A stretch of DNA of 64,000 nt from Cyanophora paradoxa CCMP329. Its lineage: Eukaryota; Plantae; Glaucophyta. This document shows positions 1 through 41,544 of the stretch, in pieces; the stretch's first letter is position 1, and each line of letters starts with the position of its first letter. Location: positions 1 to 64,000 of the forward strand of contig QPMI01000185.1 in assembly GCA_004431415.1 (NCBI GenBank), in the 5' to 3' direction. The notes under the pieces were generated by a model that worked only from the letters and a program-made list of their open reading frames with translations, was not told where the DNA came from and did no database searches. The position numbers and the translations under genes were made by a program.

Positions 1-3000
1 TGGCTATGCCAATGTTTACGACCGCTTCATCAACCTTAACATGGAGCCGTTCGACGTACGTGCGTACAGAGTCCACGCCAACACAGAATGGTCCAGCACG
101 CGACCCAACCAGCGGTTCAACTACGGGACCCTACGCACGGCAACTCGAACTCCAACCAGGACCGGGGACACGCGCAGCGCACCCCCGACACCGGCTCACG
201 GCCCATTGGTCAGCCTCACGACGCAACCACAGCAGCACTGGCCTGAGGAAGCTCGCAATCCCCCGCGGCTGTTGAAGCCAACGACGGTCATCTCGTACCA
301 GTCTCACGAGGCCGGAGTGGTAGACAGCCGTGGCTCCATTCCTTACTTCGGCATCGGCGAGCACGGATCGCCTACGAGTATTTCAATCCAATCCGAGTCA
401 TCTTGCGCCGAATTTACGACCCGGACGAGCAGCGGAAGTATAAGGAAGCCATGAAGATCATCCCTGAGTCATATGACTTCATTGCAGCCCAGCTGGAGAC
501 CAGTACAACCTGGCCCCCCTCATGGACATACCCGACTGACGACGACAAGCGTAACTTTATCGATCTTATGTACGAGCGGGAACGACGCCCGAGCCGAGCG
601 CCTCAACGACCAGCTGGAACCAAACCCCGAACGGCGCCTGGATCCGTGGATCTGACGGCGAGCGTGAACACGGCGTACGACGCCGATTACGCCTTGGGTG
701 AGGGCAAAGGTCCTTACATGGCGGCGGCGCTTACTGGTTACGCTCGAGCACGGGACGCGAAGCGAACAGGACCGCCTCGAGCGCTACGCGGAAATACAAG
801 CCACGACAGTCGGGTACAGACCATCGCGAACAAGATGGAAGATACACCACCGACGTCGTCATCTGAGACCCCGGAACGGACACCTTCACCCCCGTTCAGG
901 GCGACCTCGGCCGACCCAGCCCCAACTCTGACGATCCGGGAGTGGTGTCCTCAGCCCAGCGACAGCGTGGCCCTTGGTTATGGCACTACGAATCCCTCCA
1001 GTCTCATTACCGTCGCCCCGGCCACGGCCGGCGCGCCGCAAACTGAGACGAATGCTACCAACGTAACAATCAACCGAGCCTGCATCTCCGACCCTTACGA
1101 CGCCCTGGAAGCCGCCCCGGCCACGGCTGGCGTGGCTCAACCCGGCGTTATAGGCTTCAGAGCAAGCGACTCGGACATGACCATAACTGTCAGGAGCAGA
1201 CTTTGACACTGCCAACTGACAACGAATCGACCACGACCCCCGCAACTACCGCCCGGCCACGGCCGGCGAGGTAGACAGGTCGAACGTTGAGCCCACGGAC
1301 ACGCCAGCATGACAAACCCGCCGATCACAGCCCTACGCAAGGCCGGATGACTTCATCGTTGAGTCCGAAAGCCTCCAGACCCGACTGGATTGAATGCCCA
1401 GGGGATTGCCGTCCCCGACTGTGGGCTCGCCCACACTCGCGCGCGTGGATATATGCACGTGAATACTGGCGATCCTGGAACGAGGAGGAGCCAACGGCAG
1501 AGGAAGATGCTCGGGACAATTCACATTTCCCGGACTTACCCTACTGTCACTGAGGATCCCAGCGTTACATCCAAGTCGGCGACATTCCCGTCCCGATTCC
1601 GGAACCTGAACCGCCACTTCCAGTCCCGCCGGAGACGGCGCAATCGTGAGAACCACACACTTGGGCAGGCCACTGCTGCAGTTTCACAGCGCCTCGGAGA
1701 CTGTGGGGTCATACCAAGCACAATGCCGGCTACGCAGAGCAGCGGCTGCGGTCGACAATCCCAACCTGTTTGCAACCTATCGCAAGTACACGCCATGGAA
1801 TGCAAGTACGGACCCGTCCAAGACCGGCCTCTACCTCACAAACATTTCCACGCTGCTGACGGACTCACGGAGCTGAAACCCGCTAACCGGCACGTCCTCG
1901 ACAGACTCGCCACGTACGTCGATGTCGAGGAGCAATCAGCGATTTGCTCAAACATACCGCCATCTCCGCGCTGTCGCTTATGCGATCATGAGAATTGCGG
2001 GCACAGCCGACACTACGGATAGCTTGGAAGAGACGCTGCGTCACGCATCTGTCCTCGAGCTGCTGGCCTTGATGCACAAACAAGCAATAACCCTGACGAC
2101 TTCACGGCAAGGAATATTGCCTTGGCTCTTCGACGTCATGATCTCGTACGGCCGAAGCATGCGGGCACAATTCCCTACTTACTTCGACCGCACGGGGACT
2201 ACTATGCGCCTTTCCCCACTCTCGCCGACGCGCTGACGGTCCGCATGACGGCACTGGAACGCTTAATCCTCGAGTCGCACCTGCCGCCGCCCTTCGACGA
2301 CGAATTCGCGCCTTACCCACGCGACACCTCCAGCGCTCGATCGAACATCGCCTCGAGATGCGGGTGACAGCCCTGGCAACGCAATTCACATTGCAGCGGC
2401 TGGAGCACGCATCTACTTCCACTCGAAGCCTCGGAGTTGGAACGGCATCACTCATGGCGCAGCCTTGGCTTCGCTGTTCGGATCCGTTCTCGGCAAAGCA
2501 AATAGGCTGCTGTGGCCGACAAGCCAGACTTCTACTTCACAATGGGAGTCGAAATGGTGGAGTACATCACGCGCGTGCTCAACCTGCCCTTCGGAGGCCA
2601 CTTCGCGAATAGCCCAACAGCTGCTGGCTACCGTCGACCGTACCTTGACCGGACACAGACGCCCCGGAACAGGGGACCTTGGACGTTCCCGGAAGCCCTT
2701 CGAGCTCCACGGTGTATTACTCGACGAGTACAACTAGCGGTGATTGAATGTAACGAGCGACGCCTCGACTACTCCGAAGACCCGCTTTCTCCACTCTGGA
2801 GAGGTCTTCAGGCGTTCCGGACCGGTGCCGAGAACTCCGGCAACGTGTTCGTGACCCATCTCTCCGCGAGACAGCCTAGGGCGTGCCCGCGAGCTCGGCG
2901 ACGTAGCAGCATTCCGACAGGCCTGCGGCTCCATCTGGACCGTTACCGGAGAGAGTACATGAGCGCGTCGGTGCTCGTAGCTACCGAGCAGCTTCGAGCT

Positions 3001-9844: not shown

Positions 9845-10262
9845 ATGGAGGATGTCGCACTACTCTTACCCGACTTTGCCAAACCATTCGTCATCCACAC
9901 GGACTGGAGCAAGCGCGCCATGGGGGCGGTCCTCATGCAGGCTGACGACTGCGGACGAGAGCGTCCCATCGCTTTCATCAGCAGGACCCTGACTGCGACG
10001 GAGCGCAAGTTTCAAAGTCCGACGGAAGGGGAATGCATCGCGGTACTCTGGGCGGTGAAAGTGTGGAGCCATTACTTCGAGTGCGGGCACCCATTTACAG
10101 TCCGGACCGATCACTCGGCACTTCAATGGTTGAAGTCACAGGACGTGACGAACAACAAGGCGCTCTGTCGAGCGGCGCTGGACTTCAGGGCTACAACTAC
10201 ACCATCGAGTACCGCGCGGGGCGCACCAACGTTGTTGCAGACTTCGAGTCGCGTCTGGAACC
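9845..10262 (+). CDS. pol: RNase H domain of Gypsy pol
   Basis: PDFAKPFVIHTDWS..AMGAVLMQ..RPIAFISR..ECIAVLWAV..FTVRTDHSALQWL, then YNYTIEYRAGRTNVVAD in the next frame. Confidence 0.95.
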
Positions 10263-11479
10263 GTCACACGACCTCTTCCTCCCAGGAGCGGGTGACGGCT
10301 CAGACCTCACGACTGACATCCCCGACGGAGCTCGAGGATTCGGTGTACCCCGCCGAGGCGATCTCGACGACCCAACCCAGCTCTTCGCGTAGCCCCCACG
10401 GACACGCTCGACGGGCCAGCATGGGCGTTGGCGCCGGGAGCGAAGCGGCGTCGCCAAGCGCCCCTGTAGACGAGCATCGACCCGTTGGCCAACGGCTCGG
10501 TCCCTCCTCTACAGCACCCCAGCCGCCGACGTCACCCCCCAGTTCGCGACGGCGAATTCGGCCCGACGGCGACAGTGACACCGGTGACGAGGACGAGAGT
10601 GCACAGCCCCCTCCGCCCCGACGCACTCGCACTGAGCCTTCGCGACCACCCCACGCGGACGGAGCTCAGTCTCAGGGACAAGAGGGCTGCCCAGCCCCCG
10701 TGCCCCCTTTCCCGAAGCGACCACGTGGACGCCCGCGGAAACTCCCTCCTCCTCCCCCTCTGAACGACTCGTACTTGCGAGCTTTGGAATCCGAACGAGA
10801 TCGGAAACGCCTCCAGGCGCAAGCTGGCCCTTCTACCTCGTCCGTCGGCAACGGAATCCCCGCTCCACCTCCGCGCGACCCGCTCACCGAGCGGCTTGCA
10901 CGTGGTGAGCGAGACAAGGCGAAGACGACAACCAAGCAGCAACGCCGCGAGTCAGAGGAGCAGTACAAGCAGGCCCTCGATAACCGCCGCGAGCAGCTGT
11001 CAGACCAGGCCAAGAGTCGTCACGATGCCAACCGCCGCTCGTGCAACCGACCGGAACCGCCGACCAAGTCGACGCGACGCGAAGCGAGGAACGCCGACTG
11101 GGAAGCGTGGAAGCAGTCGGCAGACACCCCTCAGCGGGCCGCAGACCTGCCCCTCGCCTCCCAGGGAGGAGATCTCGATCCTCTCGCCACTCCATTGCGC
11201 CCCCGCCGTTCTCGACGTCGCCGACGAAGCTGAGTACGAGGCGTACTTACAGCAGCAACGCGACTCTGGAATTCCTCAGCCTACTCCGATGAGCACCGAC
11301 GCTGTCGCGCCGCTGGACAAGTCTCCTATTGGCCCTGCCGGAGGAGACCGCAACAAGCCCGCAGTCATCCATCTACCTGACGACGTGGTGGTGGAAGATA
11401 CGTGGCTGCAGGGACCCCGACCACTGGTCGACGTCCCCGTACCACCGTCTGTTGCCAAACTCGCTGTCGACGGCGCCGC

Positions 11480-27826: not shown

Positions 27827-28390
27827 ACAGCCGGCACACCAGGACACATGGATGATCAAAACAACACGAGGCCTGGTGTGGAAAAGTGATTTCCACACGG
27901 GTATCATTTCCACACGGAACACATGTCCATTGTCCATGGCCACTAGGTACTGCCGGGCGGTACCGTGTAACACCAAATTAACAGCCCGGGGCCCGTTAAT
28001 GCAAGCGCTGCCAAAGTTACTAAGTTTAAGTAAGTTAGCAGCCAACTGGCATGCGCAACTGGCAAACAGCAATTTTGCAAGCCTTTCACTGAGTCACACC
28101 GTGTGACACTGTGACAGTTGCACTGCCGGCGTCTGCCGCATGCACTGCGGCACTGCGGCAGTGCGGGAGTCTGCGGCAATCATTGAATTGCAATTGAAGG
28201 CAACTTTTTTTGCAAGCTGCCAAAAAAAGATCTCGAGCTCAGCTCAGGCTGACGTCGACTCATGCCGCGAGTCCGACGGTCATGCGGATGCGGGTGAGAT
28301 CTTTTTTTGGTTAGCTTGCGGGCAACTAGTACTTGGCGAGTTGCCTGCAACTAGTACTTGGCGAGTTATTCCGAGCAGTCTTGGGAAGGG

Positions 28391-28677
28391 TTTCTAGAAA
28401 CAATAAAGAATTCGGAATCTTACTAGGAATATTCCAGGAATTATTCCTGGAATGGGCAGTTTTTCGGTTAATTCGGAATAACATTAATTCGCTTGCGATT
28501 TGCGATGCGGGCGCGCTCTGCTGGACGCTGTGTGCTGCGTTCTGGCGAAAATCCCGCGTACGAACAAGTACCCCCCCTTATTCGGAACAATTCCTGAAAG
28601 ATCGGCGTTTCCAGCACCATTCCAGGAATCATTCTAGGAATTATTCCTGGAATAGAATTAAAAAATGTTTCTAGAAA
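28391..28677. mobile_element. Small palindromic MITE-like element
   Basis: TTTCTAGAAA at both ends (28391-400, 28668-77), with subterminal palindromic ATTCCAGGAATTATTCCTGGAAT-type repeats at both sides. Confidence 0.55.
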
Positions 28678-29205
28678 GAATGCCATCACTGATTGCAGGC
28701 CTAGGCAATTTCAACTTTGCAGCCAACTGCATGGCAAGCTTGCCGAACTTGCAGTTGCAAGCTTGCAGCCAACTTAAGCTTGCAGGCTGGTGAAGTTGCA
28801 CTGCGGCACTGCGGCAGGCTTGCCGCTTGCATCCTGAGGCGCGCGCTCAGATCGATTCGATGGTAACGGTATTGCGGTACTATTGCCAAGTTAAAAAAAA
28901 ACGTTGGCGCGGGCCGCGCCGCCCGCGCGGCAATCGCAATCGCAATCGCAGTCTAGTCGCAAAAGACTCGCAATCATTGAATCAAGGCCGATCGCAAATT
29001 GATTCGCAATTCATCTAGATCTAGCTCTAGATCTCGGCGATCGCAATCCCTGAGCCTCGGAGTCGCGCCGGCCCGGGCGCCGGCCCCGCGCGCTCAGATC
29101 GATTCGCCAGCGCGAATCGCGATTCGCGATCGGGATTCGGGATCCCGCCCCGCCCCGTCCCGCGGCCGTTACAGTTTTTACAGTTACGTATACCGTAGCC
29201 TAGTA

Positions 29206-30424
29206 CCGTGTAACACTTAAGTAATGCGCGCACTTAAGTAATGCGGTCCCAAATTAACGCGTTTTCCGCTGGCAAAACGCATTAAATTTGAAACCGCATT
29301 AATATCGAAACGCTAAGAAACTGCTGTATGTACTACTACTACGGTACCCCCTTCCAGCAGCCAAAATTAAAGGCTTCAAAACGCATTAATTCGGTACCGC
29401 ATTAATAGCCATAATATTTTTTTTTTGAGAGACTACGGTGGGGCGAACCCCCCGTAGGTAGTGATATTAAAGACAACAAAGCAATCACAAATCAAAGATA
29501 CAGTAAACTAGCACAAAATATATACAGAATCAAGAGGGATCACGAGAAGGGACACGATCAGAAGAACGCAAAAGATAAGGAGAACGAGCACGAGGAGAAG
29601 GAGTAGAAGAGCTCAAGGGCGTCGATGCAGAAGTACTAGTCACACTAGAACGACGAGGAGCACGGGGACGCAGCAAATAAGGAGAACGAGCACGAGGAAC
29701 TACAGTCGAAGACGAAGATCTAGACGAAGACGACAAGACAGAGCTAACAGCAGAACTAGAAGACGTAGTCGCAGGAGGCAAAGGCGGTAGAACAGTAGGA
29801 GAGGCGAAACGTAGGACACCACTAGAGGGAAAGTCGAAGCTGGCGGAGTGTCTAAACGGAATCGAGATTGTAGAGTTGGTAAAACAATGGACGGCTGAAG
29901 ACTAATCTGAGGAACTGGGGACGACACGAGGAAAGGGGCAGAGCTCGGGTGCAGACTCGGAATCGGCAGTATAAGAGGAGGGGCGAAACGCAAGCCAGTA
30001 GTGACAGGGAAGGCAGACGATGGGGCTGAACCAGGCGGGAGAGGCAAATATAGCGAAGTAGAAGAGAGAGAAGGGTACACACGAGGAACGTCACCATACA
30101 CAAAATACTCGCTGCCAAAAACTATACGGTCTGACGGTCGCTGAAGATAAAGAGGCGGAACTGCCTGAGGGCTAACAGTGAGAGATGGAGGAGGAAGAGG
30201 CAGAGCTAACGACAAAGGGAACGGAATCAAAGGTACAGGGAAGGCATGGAATACACGAGGAACTGGAAGGTGGAGGGGGCCAGTGCTCCTAACTAACATC
30301 GATGAAGCATCTGATGGAGGTGACGGCAAAACAACTGAGGGTAAACTAAGTTGAGGTGAAGCGAAGATTGATACAAGGTCCAAAAACGCATTAATTACTG
30401 GCGCATTAATTAAGTGTTACACGG
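29206..30424. mobile_element. Tc1/mariner(pogo)-type MITE with TA TSD, interrupted by a retroposon fragment
   Basis: 24-bp TIR CCGTGTAACACTTAA(G/T)TAATGCGC with 1 mismatch, TA on both sides, and internal CGCATTAA repeats. A related orphan left end TA|CCGTGTAACAC occurs at 27961. Confidence 0.85.
29417..30381 (-). mobile_element. 5'-truncated non-LTR retroelement 3' fragment
   Basis: T10 at 29417-26. The minus strand is pyrimidine-rich with Pro/Ser/Leu-rich ORF remnants (29700-30383, 29530-29781) and a terminal hairpin just before the poly(A). No clear TSD. Confidence 0.7.
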
Positions 30425-31235
30425 TAGTACTACGGACTACGTATACCGCGATCGCGACTGCAAGCCAGTGCAAGGCCCAATTCAATGATTGCAATTTGCA
30501 AGTCTACTTGTACGGTACGGGCCGTACGGCCGCGCCGCGGCGGAGTACTACCGTAGTACTACTAGTACTGTAGTCGTACGGACAGCTGCACTGCAGCTGG
30601 CGGCAGGCGCCGGCAGCCTGGCAGACTCTGAGACTGCAGTCTACGCCGACTCTACGGTACTACGTTTCCGAAGTTCGCAATTCATGATTGCAAGTTCGCG
30701 CATGCATATGCGCGCATCGATCAGCTGCAGTGCAGCCACGATCAGCACCGGTACGTATACGTACTATAGCTAGTGCACGATCGCAATCGATATCGGCGGC
30801 GGCAGCTCGCTGCACTGCCACTGGGCCAGGCTGCACGGCACCGTATACATTTCGAGCAACCGTCGCCACCGACACGCGTACGTACGCGTGCACAGCCTGG
30901 CAGCCCCGGCGCCGGCGGCTCCGTATACATTTCAAAGTTTCGAGCTCACGATCGGTGCGCGAGTTGATCATCGGATATCGATGTGCCGCAGTGCATGCAT
31001 ATGCTCATGACACCAATACCGCAATCATGATCATTGATCATGAATCGTCCTTAAGCTTAGGCCTGATATGTATCGATCATTAGCTCAACTTGTAAGCTCC
31101 GGCTTACATACATATGCGCGCGCAGCTCCGGTCCAGATCTAATTATAACCTAGTAGACCGTACGCGTCGGACGTCGGCTCCGGCACAATCGCGATCGTGC
31201 GCGTGCATATGACGCGTACGATGGCAATCGCGAGC

Positions 31236-34200
31236 ATGTCAAGCTCCGGGGGATCCATCTCCAAGGGCGACAAACTGCTCCAGATTACTGTCTCGGTCAT
31301 CACTGTCGCAGTGCTTCTGCTGGCCCGATCCGGCACCGCCGAGGCAGTGTGCAGGCTCGCCACCGGATGCGAAGACTGTACAAACAGCTTCGACGACGAT
31401 GGTGCGCACATATATGCATGCATATGCGCGCCCAATCGCGCCGGCGCCCCGCCGCAGCGCTAGCGAGATGCGAATGCATATATATGCTAATCTTACGCCA
31501 AATCCGAAAGAATGCGTGTACTGCAAGTCCAAATTCGACTCGGCCAAGTTCTTTTGCTTTGATTTAAACGACGCCGACGACGAAGAAGATTTCGAAAACT
31601 ATTGCTCCACCAAGAAATCGGACGTTGTCGTCTTACCATCCAATTGCCCCAAATCGGGGGGCTCGGGCTCGAGCTCTTCGGGCTCGAATTCGGATTCGGG
31701 ATCGATATCGATATCAGATTCACCGAAATCGAGTTTTTGGTCCTCCGTCAACACCGCATGGGTTACTGTGCTTGTGATTGCTGTCGTATTCCTCCTCTGT
31801 TTTTGTCGGTGCGCAATTTTGATTGTATTATAACTTCAACTATATCTGAATCCGTGCACGATCGCGATCACATGTATTCCCGTGCGCAGTCAATCAAGAC
31901 AGGGGGCGAGGGAGTACGCCGCAAAGGCGGCAGCCGCTCGTGAGCGGATCGCGGCCGCAAAGAGAAAACTGCAGGAAGCGGCTCCCGCCCCCGCAGTTGG
32001 TCCCGGGCCCGCTCTTGCACCGGTCGCGGCTCCCGCGACGTTGGCTCGAGACGGCTTCTCGTACTGCTCGGCTCCCAGCAGCGCGCTCTTCATGATATCC
32101 CATCAATGGACAGAGGTGATATATATGCTTGCGTTCGCACATATATATATATATAGATATCATAGTGTGCCTGGCCATGGGCCTGTGCATGACCCCCAAT
32201 TTTGAGCACGATCTTATTATCTAGATCTGCAGCTGGACCTTTAGGTTAATTTAGCTTGAAAATAATTATATATAAGTTCTGTCTGACATCGTTCGAATTC
32301 CAGAGCCTCGACTCGGACTACTCGCGCAACGTACACAAAATGAAGCCCTTCTTCGAGAGCGTCTTGGGCACGGCCTGCGCCGTCGCGCAGGATGCCGGCG
32401 TTTCCGGGGAAGGCCCCTGGGCCGACTTCTGCTGCATGGACCAGACCGCCTCCGACGAGGTCAAGATGAAGCAGGTCATCGAGTCGTGGGACGGGTGAGT
32501 GTTGAGGCGCGGACCGGGGTGGGACATTGATCACGAGTCGTACGCGTGGGTCAACATTAAATTATTTTTGATATCGCAGGCGCCGTCCTATCATAGTATG
32601 GCTAGGCCTCGCGATCGGCGATCGCGAAATCAGCTATCTTGCTATAGCTAAGTTATAAACTTGAAAATTAAAAATTGACATCCGATGTCGATCGCAGGTA
32701 TGCCGACAAACTGACGCTGCTCCTGTATATGTGTGGCCCGGAGACGGCTCAAAAACTTCACAATTACTTGTACGGTAACGGCATGACCCAAGTCAAGATG
32801 AGACTCGCCGCCGCGAGGCAGCAGAAGAAAGAGTCCAACAAACTCGACTGGAATATCATGAACACGAGCACCTTCCGAGGCGAAGACCACCTGGCCAGGG
32901 ACAGATTCAAGAAGGCAGCGATCAGGGAGTTCCTGTTCGACTTGGTTCCAAAGCGCATTTGGATCGTCGCGGAGCTTTCGCTGATGTACCACAACGACAA
33001 GCTCCTCCAGAATCTCGGCGCGCTTCTAGGATATGTTTAGTTTGCGTGGCCCCGCTTTTCTGCTGCTGACCAACCTAATAACGAATTCGCAGCATTCACA
33101 ATCGCCGTGGTACGCAGGCACTATAAGTGGGTGCGTTAATGCTGTTCTAAATCCTGGAGTAGAGTAGAAAGTCGTATTATATTAGCTATATAAAATTAAA
33201 TCTAGAGACGCATATGGAGGAGTGCGGGGATCCAAATTCGAAACCGAAAACGCTGGCGCCTCCGGTCCCCCGCTCGTCACGGCGTGATCGCCTACCGCAT
33301 CCCTTTAGCTTGCGGCGTGCGCCGCCCTGCCGCTGCCCTTCCATGGCCACAATAAATCACCGCCGCCTATATCTAGGTCTAGATAGGCTAGGATATAGGC
33401 TAGACCTAGACACACACCACAATCCGAAGGAAGGAGAAGGGGGCGCTCTGATTTTCGATCTTACGCCGCCAATGATCACTTCTCGCAATATTAATCGTTT
33501 GCGATCAGAACGAGACGGTTGGTGAAGTCGGTCAAGAATTCGCCGCGTTCTTCCAGGAATGCGCCGGTACCGTCTCGCTCGATTTTCCGCTGGGGAATGA
33601 GAAGAAGGGCTTCGATGGCTTCCGGCACGGCTCCCCTCAAAAGCCTTTCATGGGACGGATCGCATCCACGGGGAAAAAGATCATGTTCATGGGAGGGTTT
33701 TGCGCTCCGGGTTTCTTCAGACCCAAAGGCGTCGATACGTACGAGCCCCTTAACGAATTCGACTGCAAACTCGAGATTGATCGGTGAGCGTGCTTCCCAA
33801 GTTCCGGAACTTAATACGAATTTTTAGCTCTGGAGTGGCCTTGTACATGTCCTGCGTCCTCGAATATTTATAATCGATATCACAGATTCCGTATTGTCCA
33901 TTTGGCGAAAACTGGCCAATGGATTTCATCCGTGGAGATCGCAAAGGAAGAGGCACACAAGCAGAAAGCCCCCTACACGGAAGAATTAGTTCTGTGAGCT
34001 GCATGCGTCTTGATATCGCTATTAGTGTCTTCACTGCCTTTTTCGGGGCTCACTGCATGCGCAGGGCTCGTTCAGACAAATACAGGACTTTTTGGGCTTA
34101 TTATTGGACACATATTACAATGTTTCTTTACCTGGGTCCTCTGATTATTTTAATGGTCTGTGGGATGCTGATAATTCTTGTAATCCTACTTCCTTTAGCG

Positions 34201-34362
34201 TGTTGCGAGAAGTGTTGCCAGCAGAATAATCAGAGTAGTGACGGCACTCAAAGCGGCACACCTTCTGATTTCAACTCCAACTTGGCCAAGTTCCGTCTTA
34301 AAGAGAAGCCTGCAGCGAGCGCTTTTAGCAGCACAGTTAACATCAAAATTGATGACAGTTAA
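31236..34362 (+). CDS. Receptor-like membrane protein: signal peptide, PSI-like Cys-rich ectodomain, TM helix, HET (PF06985-like) domain, further C-terminal hydrophobic helices
   Basis: Signal LLQITVSVITVAVLLLARSGTAEA. Cys pattern C-x5-C-x2-C...C-VY-C...C...C...CP. Ser-rich linker, then TM AWVTVLVIAVVFLLCFC. HET-like motifs ISHQW (32095), WADFCCMDQ..EVKMKQV (32418) and RIWIVAE (32954). Exon joining after 33040 is less certain. Confidence 0.7.
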
Positions 34363-34544
34363 ACGTTTATTATTAGATGAGTAAGCTTATCACGTGATGA
34401 ATAATCATGAATGACCGCCTGTCTTGTCGCAAAATTCAAGTTCTAGATGCGATCCGAGCTACACGTTTTGAACCTTGGCCGCGGCCCGCGGCCGCCCTTC
34501 GGTGCTGTCTTTTCAATTTGGCGCCGAGGGATCGGGGCTCTCCT

Positions 34545-35270
34545 CACCCTGCCTCCCGCCCTCTCCCTCCCGTCCCCCCCCCCCCCCCTCCCCCCATCCC
34601 CTCCCGTCTCTCCCCCGCGATTTTGATGTACAGATGTTCTTTTGCAGTGTGAGCGAACTTACACGTACAGTACGAATATATCGGCGGATAAGTTAATGGC
34701 CCCTGCACCTGGGCCCTGCGCTGCCTGGCCGCCTCGACTTTCCGCAACGTCAACCGAGAGGGCCCGGGGTCACATCTGCATGGACCTCTTATAATTAATA
34801 GAGCTATCAGAGCTTTGAATTCACAAGCGACTATTGTAATGGCTATTAGAGCTTATTAGAAATTTCTTTAATTCGGCTGGTCCGCTTTCCGCAATGCCAT
34901 ATTTAATTAACCGAGAGGGCCCGGGGTCATATCTGCATGCATGCCAGCCGGTGTCAAGCCAGCGGCTAGGATGCTCTGGGGCGGGGCGGGCGGGGTGGGG
35001 GGTGGTGGCCACCCCCCCACCCCCCCCCCCTTCCCGCCCCTCCCAAGCCCCCCCCCCCCCGCCCCCCCCCCCCCTCTCCCGTCCCGTCCCGTCTCCTCCC
35101 GCGATTTCAATGTACAGATGTTATTATGCAGTGTGAGAGAACATACACGTACAGTGCGAATATATCTGCCCATAAGTTAGTGGCCCCCTGCACCTGGGCC
35201 CTGCGCTGCCTGGCCGCCTCCACTTTCCGCAAGCGAGCGGGGCGCGCGGGGTCATATCTGCGTGCCGGGC
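34545..35270. repeat. Diverged local direct duplication (~480-bp spacing)
   Basis: CCCGCGATTT..ATGTACAGATGTT...GCCCCTGCACCTGGGCCCTGCGCTGCCTGGCCGCCTC..CTTTCCGCAA at ~34614-34747 and ~35098-35232. Confidence 0.85.
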
Positions 35271-35369
35271 CGGGACGCGCGCGCGCGCGCCGGCGTCAAG
35301 TCATGATCAGAAGCTAGGATGCTGTGGGGGGAGGGGGGGGGGGGGGGGGGAGGGCGGGCGGGCGCACCC

Positions 35370-36930
35370 CGAGGGCCGATACGGCCGCGGCGAGGAGGGC
35401 CCCTTCGTCTACCCCCTGCGAGGAGAAGGGCGCCGAGGTCAGAGCGGAGCGTAAGAGAAGCGAGCGACGGGAAGAATAGAGTAATATATCACGAATCAAA
35501 GAGACTTCTAAAGCTCTATAATATATCACGAATCACGACCCCCTGGGAGAAGAGCGTCAGAGCGGAGCCCTTAAGAGAAGCGAAGCAAAGGTCGCTTGTA
35601 AATTTAATTCTAATAGCTCTAATAGCTCTAAAAGTAAACTTAAAGCTCTAATAGCCATTTCTCCTCCGGGAGGGCGGGAGGGCGGGCGTGCCTCGTTGCG
35701 GGAGGCGCGGAGGCGCCCGGAGCGGTCCTCGATCGCCTCGGCGCAGTCGACAAAGGCGCAGCCGGTCACGCGCACGCCGCGGGAGGCGCCCGCCGTCATC
35801 ACGCCGGCCGCCGCGATCCGCTCGAAGCGGCAGCGGTCCACCTGTCCGAGGCGTGAGCGGCAGCGGCGGGAGCGGCACCGGGAGCGGCGTGCTCGCCTCG
35901 GCGCATGCGACGTTGCCGAAGACGATACCCGCTCGGCAGTCCAGGACCTGGGTACCCTCCAACCGGACGGCCCCGTCCACGCGCATGCTGCGCACGAAGG
36001 AAAGGAAAGGAGGGAGGAACGAGGGGGGGTACGGTACGGGGGATACCTGAAGAGGCCGGTGCTGCAGTTCTGCAGGCGGCAGTTGCGCACGAGGAGGCGG
36101 CCCGGGCGGTCCCGCGCGTATCCGTCGACGACCCCCGCGGCGCCGCCCCCGTCGATGACGCACGACTCGATGCACACCGTGTGGCCCCCTCCCGAGGTCA
36201 TTCCCTCCACGTACACTGTCGGCGCGGCGGCGCGTATACGTACGCGCCCGTCAGAGCCGCTGCGGTCGCGGCCGTGCGCTCTAATCGAAGCCGGCGCCGA
36301 GGCCGGGCGCCGCACCGGTCCCGTTGATGGCCAGGCGGCTGACGAGCACCTCCGCTGAGAGAGCGATGATCCGCACCACTTCCGTCGAGTTGGCGTTTGC
36401 CTGCGGCGAAAGCGCGCGGGCGGCACCGACCGGTACCGGTCAGCGCGCAGCTTGCGCGGCCCTCGCCGCAGCGCCAAGCGGATCGTACCCGCACGAGCTG
36501 CGTCATCATTCCCCGTGCGTCCTGGCTCCCGACGATCGCGAGCGACCCGCCTTTCGGCGGCCGTAGAAGTGCATAATTTGCCACGGTGTGCACGCCCGGT
36601 TTCAGAATCACGGTCCCGCTGTCGACGCGGTTAGCTTCGTGAACTTAAGTCGAAGAACTAAGCGATGCGCAAGACAGCTAAGCACGCAGTGGCGACTCCA
36701 GGAGCGCAGGGATCTAGAGACAGCGGTCGTGCGCGTGCCCGCGGTCGAGGGCCCCGGCGGAAGCCGTCAGGCACGAACAGGCGCGCGAACCTGCAACCAA
36801 TGGCCTCCAGCGCCTGATCGAGCGTAGTGTACGCCCCCGGAGGAGCAGGTTCGTTTGGCGTCGGGAGGTGTACGAACACGATGGGGGAGGGGAGCGGGCC
36901 GAGACCCTCTGGGAGGGCGTCGGCGGCCAT
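35370..36930 (-). CDS. Right-handed parallel beta-helix (pectin-lyase-like) protein; 3' end uncertain
   Basis: YTTLDQAL, ILKPGVHT, VCIESCVID, LLVRNCRLQNC, VRLEGTQVLDC, VDRCRFERI, VRVTGCAFVDC are typical beta-helix coils across spliced exons. Confidence 0.7.
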
Positions 36931-40182: not shown

Positions 40183-41544
40183 TCGCCGAAGGGACCCGGG
40201 AGGCGGGCGACGGCGGCGCGCACGCGGCCGTAGAGGTCGTCCAGCAGCGCCTTCCGCTCGGCCGCGGGGCGGGCCTTCAGGGCGCCCTCCAGGAACGACT
40301 CAGATATGACCCGGAGGGCCCCGACGGCCGGCGCCGCATAGTGCGCCATGCTCGCCTCCTCGCCGGCCGCGGCGGCCGCCGCCGCCGCCTTGGGCCAGAC
40401 CTGGTCCGGCACGCGCCGCATGGAGAGGACGTCAAGGCGGAGGCCCGGAAACTCTCCCGCCGAGAACGGAGCCTCGAACTCCTCGCGGGAGCGGGTCCAC
40501 CAGGGCGGGCACATAGCCGCGTACTCCTCCGGGGCAAGCTTTCCCTCCTGCACCATCTCCTGCGCCGCCGCGTCCCAAAGGCCCTCCGCCGTCGCGCGCT
40601 GCGCCGAATAAATGTGAGGGGCGGCGCGGCGGGGGCGGGCGGGCGCGGGAAGAGGCGAAGCGCGCGCGGGCGCGCACCCAGTCCGGCGAGCCGTCGTTGG
40701 CGATGGAGATGACGACGAACTTGCCGCCGGGCGCCAGCTCCGTCGCCCGCTTCGCGAGGAAGAGCTTCCAGTCTTCGGCGGCGCGCGCGCTGTGTCCGAC
40801 CGACCGCGGCGCGTGAGGCGCGTCCGTCGGGGCGGGGCGGGGCGGGGCGGACCGGTACGCGGCGAGCTCGTCGGGGGTGAGGGCGGCCTGTGCGAGGCGG
40901 GAGGCCCCGCGGCCGGCGAGGGGCGGCGAGGAGAGCCAGTGGATGGAAGTCGCGCAGACGCCGAAGTTTACGGAGGCGGGCGCGGCGACGTCCTCGTAGA
41001 AGGAGCGGCCGACGCAGGAGAGGAAGACGCCCGGCATGCGCGCGTACGTCTGGGGGTCCTCCTCCATGACCGCCATCGCCGAGTTCCAGTCGTTCGTCGG
41101 CAGGTCCTCCATCACTGCGGGAAAGACTCCGTCGTCAGGCGCGCGGCCCGAAGCGGGCGCGAGGCGAGGCTGTAGCGAGAGCGCACCGACGTTGATCGGA
41201 TTGTTGTGCTTCTCGCGGAAAGTCTCCACGGCCGCGCGCATGAGGTGCACCGAGTTCTTGCCCTGCGCGCGCGTCAGCGGGAGCGCTGCGAAAGCGAGCC
41301 AGGGCGGAGGAGCACGCACTTGGGAGGCGCCGTAGTCGACGAAGGTGACGGGCCCGGCGGCGGGCACGGGGAGCAAGCCGACGACCTGCTTGATGATGGG
41401 GATGGAGGCGGCGACGTTCCCGCCCTGCGAGGTCGAGTGCTCGTTGTACGCGCCCTTCTGCATGCCCGCGATCGTCGCCTTGGCGGACTTGAGCGGCTCG
41501 CTGGCAACGGGGGCGGCATCCGAGACAATCGCCGGCGGGGCCAT
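40146..41544 (-). CDS. SABATH-family SAM-dependent carboxyl methyltransferase (Methyltransf_7)
   Basis: M..GAYNEHSTSQ, FVDYGASQ|GKNS, EDLPTNDWN, VGRSFYE, SIHWLS, DWKLFLAKRATELAPGG, PWWTRSREE. Confidence 0.93.

Follow-up and report, generated by a model that had tools for sequence, protein, structure and literature searches.

An expressed membrane protein of Cyanophora paradoxa with a probable, divergent HET-like module in its cytoplasmic part

A nine-exon gene at 31221-34362 on the + strand of a 64,000-nucleotide (nt) stretch of the Cyanophora paradoxa CCMP329 genome (contig QPMI01000185.1, positions 1 to 64,000, hereafter the window) is real and expressed. It encodes a membrane protein of 644 amino acids (aa) that combines a short, Cys-rich secreted module with an extensive cytoplasmic part. 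Residues ~224-310 of the cytoplasmic part are probably a divergent member of the HET/TIR-like superfamily, as suggested by two short motifs that occur in the order and at the spacing of the corresponding motifs in fungal HET domains. On balance, we favor the explanation that this is a membrane protein with a divergent HET/TIR-like cytoplasmic module that may act in defense. The initial annotation of this gene had called it a Toll-like-receptor analogue; that label is an inference, and so is any NADase or cell death activity that might go with it.

The gene model is supported by transcript evidence at every splice junction. Once the exons are joined, the reading frame runs uninterrupted over 644 codons to a TAA stop codon at 34360-34362, the last base of which is exactly the end given in the initial annotation. 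The start given there, 31236, is an in-frame ATG, but it is only the third such ATG after 31209 and 31221, and our model begins at 31221. Seven of the introns are GT-AG, several of them with the donor GTGCG, and the one between exons 5 and 6 (33018-33092) is GC-AG, with its junction present in spliced contigs of runs X1 and X2. When cDNA-like contigs from four public runs of three studies (X1, X2, X5, and X6) were aligned on 31150-34450, eight of eight junctions were found at the predicted bases with zero sequence differences. The exon 1/2 junction (31401/31511) was present in four runs, and the exon 2/3 junction (31808/31890) was present in X2 record 6. Overlapping contigs chain exon 1 to exon 9, with exons 1-2-3 in X2 record 6, 3-4-5 in X1 record 2, 4-5-6-7 in X2 record 7, and 7-8-9 in X6 record 17. 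To the extent that overlapping contigs, rather than a full-length read, can show it, this chain places the exons of the ectodomain and those of the HET motifs on a single transcript, and the continuous frame agrees. Separate transcripts for these exons would have undone the receptor proposed in the initial annotation. The contigs also extend the 3′ untranslated region to at least 34435. Seventeen public runs with one organism label contain at least part of the stretch, several of them about half of its words, as expected of spliced RNA. A tblastn search of the model against the 64-kb window found no paralogue.

In order to score the putative HET motifs, a reference set of HET domains was assembled from metagenomes, since weak matches to single motifs do not show up when all Pfam models are scanned. 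With a degenerate 27-nt pattern encoding W[IVM]DxCCIDK, at least 120 loci (L001-L120) were recovered from metagenomes, where by our own estimate ~3 would be expected by chance. Most open reading frames (ORFs) among the matches listed have an upstream LSH[TR]W plus a downstream RGWTLQE, and nearly all of those inspected contain complete HET-E-like domains. Some of the metagenome contigs (L013, L078, and L112) carry two copies. In 84 domains extracted from these loci, LSHxW also precedes W[IVM]DxCCIDK by 44-57 aa and RGWTLQE follows it by 52-78 aa. The fetched domains were identified as PF06985 in seven of seven tested, with 44-63 bits relative to a gathering score of 22.5 bits, and their relatives in databases are annotated as fungal HET or HET-E-1-related proteins. 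When the fungal HET alignment was used as a profile query, all proteins retrieved were fungal HET proteins, with no haptophyte bridge sequences. A hidden Markov model (HMM) and position-specific scoring matrix (PSSM) blocks were built from the 84 fungal HET-E-like domains, with null distributions of 200,000 shuffles for the PSSMs and 20,000 composition-preserving shuffles for the HMM.

Two of the HET blocks are recognizable in the predicted protein (Table 1). Exon 3 contains the first, [ILV]S[HY]xW, which forms strand beta-A near the N-terminus of HET domains, and exon 4 contains the second, WxDxxCIxQ or WxDxCCxDK followed by S..E[LV]. The HET HMM aligned to exon 4 on the core block with a score of 13.3 bits, attained by 1 of the 20,000 shuffles, and in a scan of the 547 six-frame ORFs of the window exon 4 scored 13.1 relative to 3.4 for the runner-up. 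Alignment with hhalign placed exon 4 on HET columns 48-75 (P = 1.4e-4) and exon 3 on HET columns 9-22 (P = 0.047), in both cases the expected columns. ISHQW and WADF are 45 aa apart, within the fungal range of 44-57, and the globular region that follows the linker begins with these two blocks. The PSSM block tests gave a Fisher combined P of 4e-5. Two motifs with the right spacing and in the right place are unlikely to be due to chance, with a joint P of about 1e-5 to 1e-6, although all of these P-values are somewhat optimistic because the HET-E-like reference subfamily was picked after the CC motif of the query was known. Family, homology, and Atlas searches were made exon by exon, and the putative domain is split over exons 3, 4, and 5. 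In the ESM Atlas, the entries nearest to exon 4 were clusters from haptophytes, with no family assigned, and a HET cluster from ascomycetes, with a weak score of 0.83.

Taken at this level, homology of aa ~224-288 to HET domains is reasonably likely, because the two motifs are properly spaced and Haptophyceae are known to have HET homologues (PMC4986451). ISHQW would then probably be strand beta-A, and WADFCCMDQ..SDEV strand beta-B together with the start of helix alpha-B, which matches the fungal HET-E-like subfamily, while the rest of the domain has probably diverged beyond recognition or been replaced.

A number of results weigh against the assignment, in addition to the optimism of the P-values. 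Scans of single exons with Pfam, at E-values up to 10, gave no match to HET, TIR, or PSI; nothing was reported for exons 1 and 3-6, and exons 2 and 7 had weak matches below the cutoff, none of them to these three families. PADLOC and NCBIfam searches of single exons returned nothing meaningful. Exon 5 had no relative, itself included, among 1.84 billion representatives, and its sole match there, a coiled-coil protein (P0001), was judged spurious (BLASTP E = 0.57). There was also nothing for exon 5 in the ESM Atlas and no candidate for exon 4 in a word-indexed protein search, and a PDB sequence search with exons 2, 4, 5, and 7 gave noise only. The third block is also at odds with the fungal pattern. 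RIWIVAE, which keeps the R.W...E pattern of RGWTLQE, had been taken as HET block 3, which is not sustained by its PSSM score (0.9 bits, P = 0.15) or by its distance of 111 aa from block B relative to 52-78 aa in fungi, an excess of ~60 aa. A search for the block that follows alpha-B and contains strand beta-C (CYVYLxDV) gave a best score of 2.8 bits (P = 0.29) in the wrong place, while the expected place scored -3.9 bits. The motifs of the conserved C-terminal half of HET domains (EDxAYCLLG and LLYGEG..RLQ) were not found in order.

A segment in exon 5, NYLYGNGMTQVKMRLAA (YLYGNG..MRL, aa 321-337, 32762-32812), resembles the HET motif LLYGEG..AF.RLQ (hhalign P = 0.036). This match was taken as chance because it is located before the block C candidate and not after it, with a rearranged domain as a conceivable alternative. 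Exon 5 does retain R, W, E, and L of block C. WIVAEL, which contains Glu391, has the form of the TIR catalytic motif, W-x-[LV]-x-E-L, with no statistical support here. Glu391 in RIWIVAEL is a weakly supported candidate for a TIR-type catalytic Glu, and the only one. The HET domain with three motifs described in the initial annotation was thus upheld for the second motif, which is clearly beyond chance (P = 3e-5), was marginal for the first (P = 0.03-0.05), which is at the fungal spacing from the second, and was not supported for the third. Overall, this comparison of sequences makes the HET assignment probable rather than proven.

Table 1 Predicted features of the nine-exon gene and its protein. 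Positions are those of the window, and residues are numbered from the ATG at 31221. TM, transmembrane.
Feature	Residues (aa)	Position (nt)	Strand	Description or basis
Exon 1		31221-31401	+	Start codon, signal peptide, ectodomain Cys 1-3; ORF and splice sites
Exon 2		31511-31808	+	Ectodomain Cys 4-8, Ser/Gly stalk, TM helix 1; hydropathy and Cys positions
Exon 3		31890-32115	+	Basic/Ala-rich juxtamembrane segment, Ala/Pro linker, putative HET block A SALFMISHQWTE
Exon 4		32304-32494	+	Putative HET helix alpha-A region and block B EGPWADFCCMDQTASDEV
Exon 5	106 aa in length	32698-33017	+	Divergent region with RIWIVAE (block C candidate)
Exon 6		33093-33130	+	38-nt micro-exon; both junctions in RNA contigs, frame kept
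Exon 7		33509-33783	+	Cytoplasmic, no recognizable family
Exon 8		33886-33993	+	Cytoplasmic; junctions in runs X1, X2, X5, and X6
Exon 9		34065-34362	+	Second hydrophobic anchor ending in CCEKCC, 47-aa polar tail, TAA
Signal peptide	1-42	31221-31346	+	Hydrophobic core LLQITVSVITVAVLLLA, AEA/V cleavage motif before Val43
Cys-rich ectodomain	44-106	31350-31647 (across intron 1)	+	Exactly 8 Cys, about 60 aa
Ser/Gly stalk	107-136	31648-31737	+	In exon 2
TM helix 1	140-159	31747-31806	+	Hydropathy
Ala/Pro linker	191-215		+	Leads into motif region
Putative block A (beta-A)		32080-32115	+	SALFMISHQWTE; best placement in exon 3, PSSM 7.0 bits, P = 0.034
Putative block B (beta-B and start of alpha-B)		32409-32462	+	EGPWADFCCMDQTASDEV; PSSM 20.2 bits, 5 of 200,000 shuffles, P = 3e-5
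Block C candidate		32939-32986	+	DLVPKRIWIVAELSLM (RIWIVAE); best placement in exon 5, 0.9 bits, P = 0.15
Second hydrophobic anchor	554-597	34087-34218 (exon 9)	+	~40 residues, ends in CCEKCC, then 47-residue polar tail

The features on which the receptor reading was built, namely a signal peptide, an ectodomain with eight Cys, a Ser-rich stalk, a TM helix, and three ordered motifs, are all present in the sequence. The ectodomain Cys are at aa 44, 50, 53, 62, 65, 76, 92, and 106, a spacing of C-x5-C-x2-C-x8-C-x2-C-x10-C-x15-C-x13-C. The likeness of this module to the PSI domain (PF01437) consists of the eight Cys and their spacing, including a CxxC with an aromatic residue (CVYC), which we take to resemble the PSI pattern. 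Pfam found no PSI match on exon 1 or exon 2 scanned singly, each of which has only part of the module because intron 1 interrupts it. TM helix 1 is followed by RQSRQGAREYAAKAAAARERIAAAKRK, a segment rich in Ala and strongly basic, which predicts that the residues after the helix (~390-400 aa) are cytoplasmic. The three motifs are found in this part of the protein, with ISHQW at aa 229, WADFCCMDQ at aa 274, and RIWIVAE at aa 385. They are followed by ~150 further residues of no recognized family, which extend to a second hydrophobic stretch.

This second stretch of ~40 residues was overlooked in the initial annotation, which had described one TM helix and a surface receptor. Hydropathy in 19-aa windows peaks at aa 16-45, 135-163, and 560-599, with windows above 1.6 at aa 560-581. 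The second stretch could be a membrane hairpin or a single pass, and the CCEKCC at its end is a possible palmitoylation cluster. Exon 9 also has a weak match to the reticulon-homology family (16.5 bits), which is below the Pfam cutoff of 27. With this stretch present, the protein is therefore not a simple single-pass (type I) protein, and it would have at least two membrane segments after removal of the signal peptide. TM helix 1 therefore fixes one end of the cytoplasmic part to the membrane and the second anchor the other, an arrangement that does not fit a simple Toll-like layout and that speaks against a receptor of that kind.

The most serious alternative, which we consider rather unlikely, is that the gene encodes an orphan, lineage-specific membrane protein in which the HET-like motifs are a chance resemblance on an unrelated fold, with a function apart from HET/TIR signaling. 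The significant signal is found in only ~30 aligned residues, 1 of the 20,000 composition-matched shuffles did beat the observed HMM score, and the motifs were picked by eye from a very large scan, in which some chance matches are to be expected. Support is lacking for block C, for beta-C, and for the C-terminal half of HET, and there is neither a Pfam match by exon nor a relative in sequence, Atlas, viral, or PDB searches, all of which count in favor of chance and against homology. A chance origin would, however, have to account for two independent blocks in order, with fungal spacing, at the start of the globular region, at the joint P given above. Given the HET homologues reported in Haptophyceae (PMC4986451), a divergent member also has an appreciable prior probability.

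An improbable alternative is that the region is a true remnant of the HET/TIR superfamily that has lost its effector function, with the beta-A to alpha-B part fused to unrelated sequence in a structural or scaffolding membrane protein. Such a protein could reside in the endoplasmic reticulum or Golgi, given its two anchors and weakly reticulon-like C-terminus. The confinement of the signal to aa 224-288 with an unrecognizable remainder, the excess length between blocks B and C, the sub-threshold reticulon-homology match of the last exon, and the possibility that the second hydrophobic stretch is a hairpin are all consistent with a remnant. Expression in several studies, an intact 644-codon frame, and eight correctly spliced introns argue instead for a maintained function, and the R, W, E, and L of block C leave room for a catalytic Glu.

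If the favored explanation, a divergent HET/TIR-like module acting in defense, is correct, the cytoplasmic module would be held at the membrane between the two anchors. Ligand binding, contact, or clustering via the small ectodomain may bring such modules together, and the clustered modules could then signal by homotypic association or by cleavage of NAD+, as TIR domains do. The outcome would be a defense or cell death response, for example to viral attack or to cell-cell contact. The more specific proposal of a surface sensor, whose small Cys-knot ectodomain would act directly across the membrane on a HET-type (TIR-superfamily) death effector, seems unlikely to us at present.

To our knowledge, HET domains have been studied only in fungi. 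A 2014 study reported homologues in Haptophyceae, one of them from Gephyrocapsa (Emiliania) huxleyi (PMC4986451). The relation between HET and TIR, which the initial annotation had used as background, is in the literature: TIR structures are the best HHpred hits of HET, with the likeness limited to the first ~100 aa and three blocks (Dyrka et al. 2014, PMC4986451). Fungal HET domains cause cell death upon overexpression, and a 2025 review still lists their mechanism and structure as not determined (PMC12881547). A fungal HET domain from the fetched set was folded with a mean predicted local distance difference test (pLDDT) value of 88.8. Foldseek found no match to this model in the PDB, and an exhaustive aligner with the same model returned TIR and deoxyribosyltransferase folds.

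The likeness to fungal HET-E-like domains consists of block A ([ILV]SHxW) and block B (WxDxCCxD[KQ]..SxE[LV]), which are in the same order, 45 aa apart, and at the N-terminal edge of the globular region. The differences are considerable. Fungal HET domains are cytosolic and often N-terminal in nucleotide-binding leucine-rich repeat (NLR) proteins, whereas here the putative domain is between two membrane anchors behind a secreted Cys-rich module. In fungi, RGWTLQE is strongly conserved 52-78 aa beyond block B, and the C-terminal half is conserved as well, whereas here block C is degenerate, 111 aa away, and the C-terminal half is missing. Fungal domains score 44-63 bits to PF06985, whereas here no single exon is reported by Pfam.

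In overall layout, the protein resembles the products of a set of genes in G. huxleyi that encode an ectodomain, a TM helix, and a TIR domain (e.g., cogent1101_i1), which are induced within 0.5 h of virus addition and have been proposed to be receptor-like antiviral sensors (PMC12489294, New Phytol 2025). Both have an extracellular region, one TM helix, and an intracellular TIR-superfamily module, assuming in our case that the HET-like assignment is correct. The G. huxleyi proteins contain a canonical TIR with a clear catalytic Glu, whereas the protein described here has a divergent, HET-like module, a tiny ectodomain, and an additional anchor. That study considered canonical TIR families only (PF13676, PF01582, and others), and HET (PF06985) was not among them. 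Animal Toll-like and interleukin-1 (IL-1) receptors likewise combine an extracellular part, a single TM helix, and a membrane-near cytoplasmic TIR-superfamily domain. Their ectodomains are composed of leucine-rich repeats or immunoglobulin domains and their cytoplasmic domain is a TIR, whereas the ectodomain here is ~60 aa in length and contains 8 Cys, the cytoplasmic domain is HET-like and is succeeded by ~250 additional residues and a second hydrophobic anchor, and adaptor partners are not known.

The gene is located in a low-GC island (28000-36000) with about 50% GC, relative to 60-74% in the rest of the window; in 400-nt windows, the island has 41-60% and its surroundings 60-80%. Its coding sequence has 54% GC, with 66% at third codon positions (GC3), and its introns have 48% GC, while long ORFs elsewhere in the window have a GC3 of 73-85%. 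A giant-virus origin of this low-GC gene is not supported, as viral contigs gave no match to exons 4, 5, or 7 or to the motif pattern. The gene uses typical local splice signals, including the GC-AG intron. Just downstream of it, a unit of ~485 bp is duplicated in tandem (34540-35240), with long poly-C or C-rich tracts, and an inverted poly-G tract is found nearby at 35325-35365. Elsewhere in the window are a 370-aa ORF on the - strand (40432-41544) that contains a SAM-dependent (S-adenosylmethionine-dependent) carboxyl methyltransferase domain (Methyltransf_7, E = 2.8e-13), and an ORF on the + strand (9845-11233) that contains reverse transcriptase-associated RNase H domains (E = 1.7e-29).

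The initial annotation had also presented the architecture as one not known to have been described. This stands in part: no description of a HET domain combined with a TM helix was found in the literature searched, but HET homologues outside fungi (PMC4986451) and ectodomain-TM-TIR genes (PMC12489294) have both been published, and for this reason a HET-like module in a membrane protein is not a new category. If the HET assignment fails, the gene encodes an ordinary lineage-specific membrane protein. If it holds, extracellular sensing would be linked to a HET/TIR-like effector in an alga, and the receptor-like genes of G. huxleyi, which are based on TIR (PMC12489294), would be joined by a HET branch. 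The protein would also provide a minimal HET core, consisting of blocks A and B only, with which to ask which parts of the domain are essential. As a surface sensor of the unlikely kind outlined above, the protein would be without precedent as a membrane receptor built on HET, and no earlier HET-domain protein from outside fungi would have offered a role in antiviral defense, allorecognition, or gamete recognition that can be tested.

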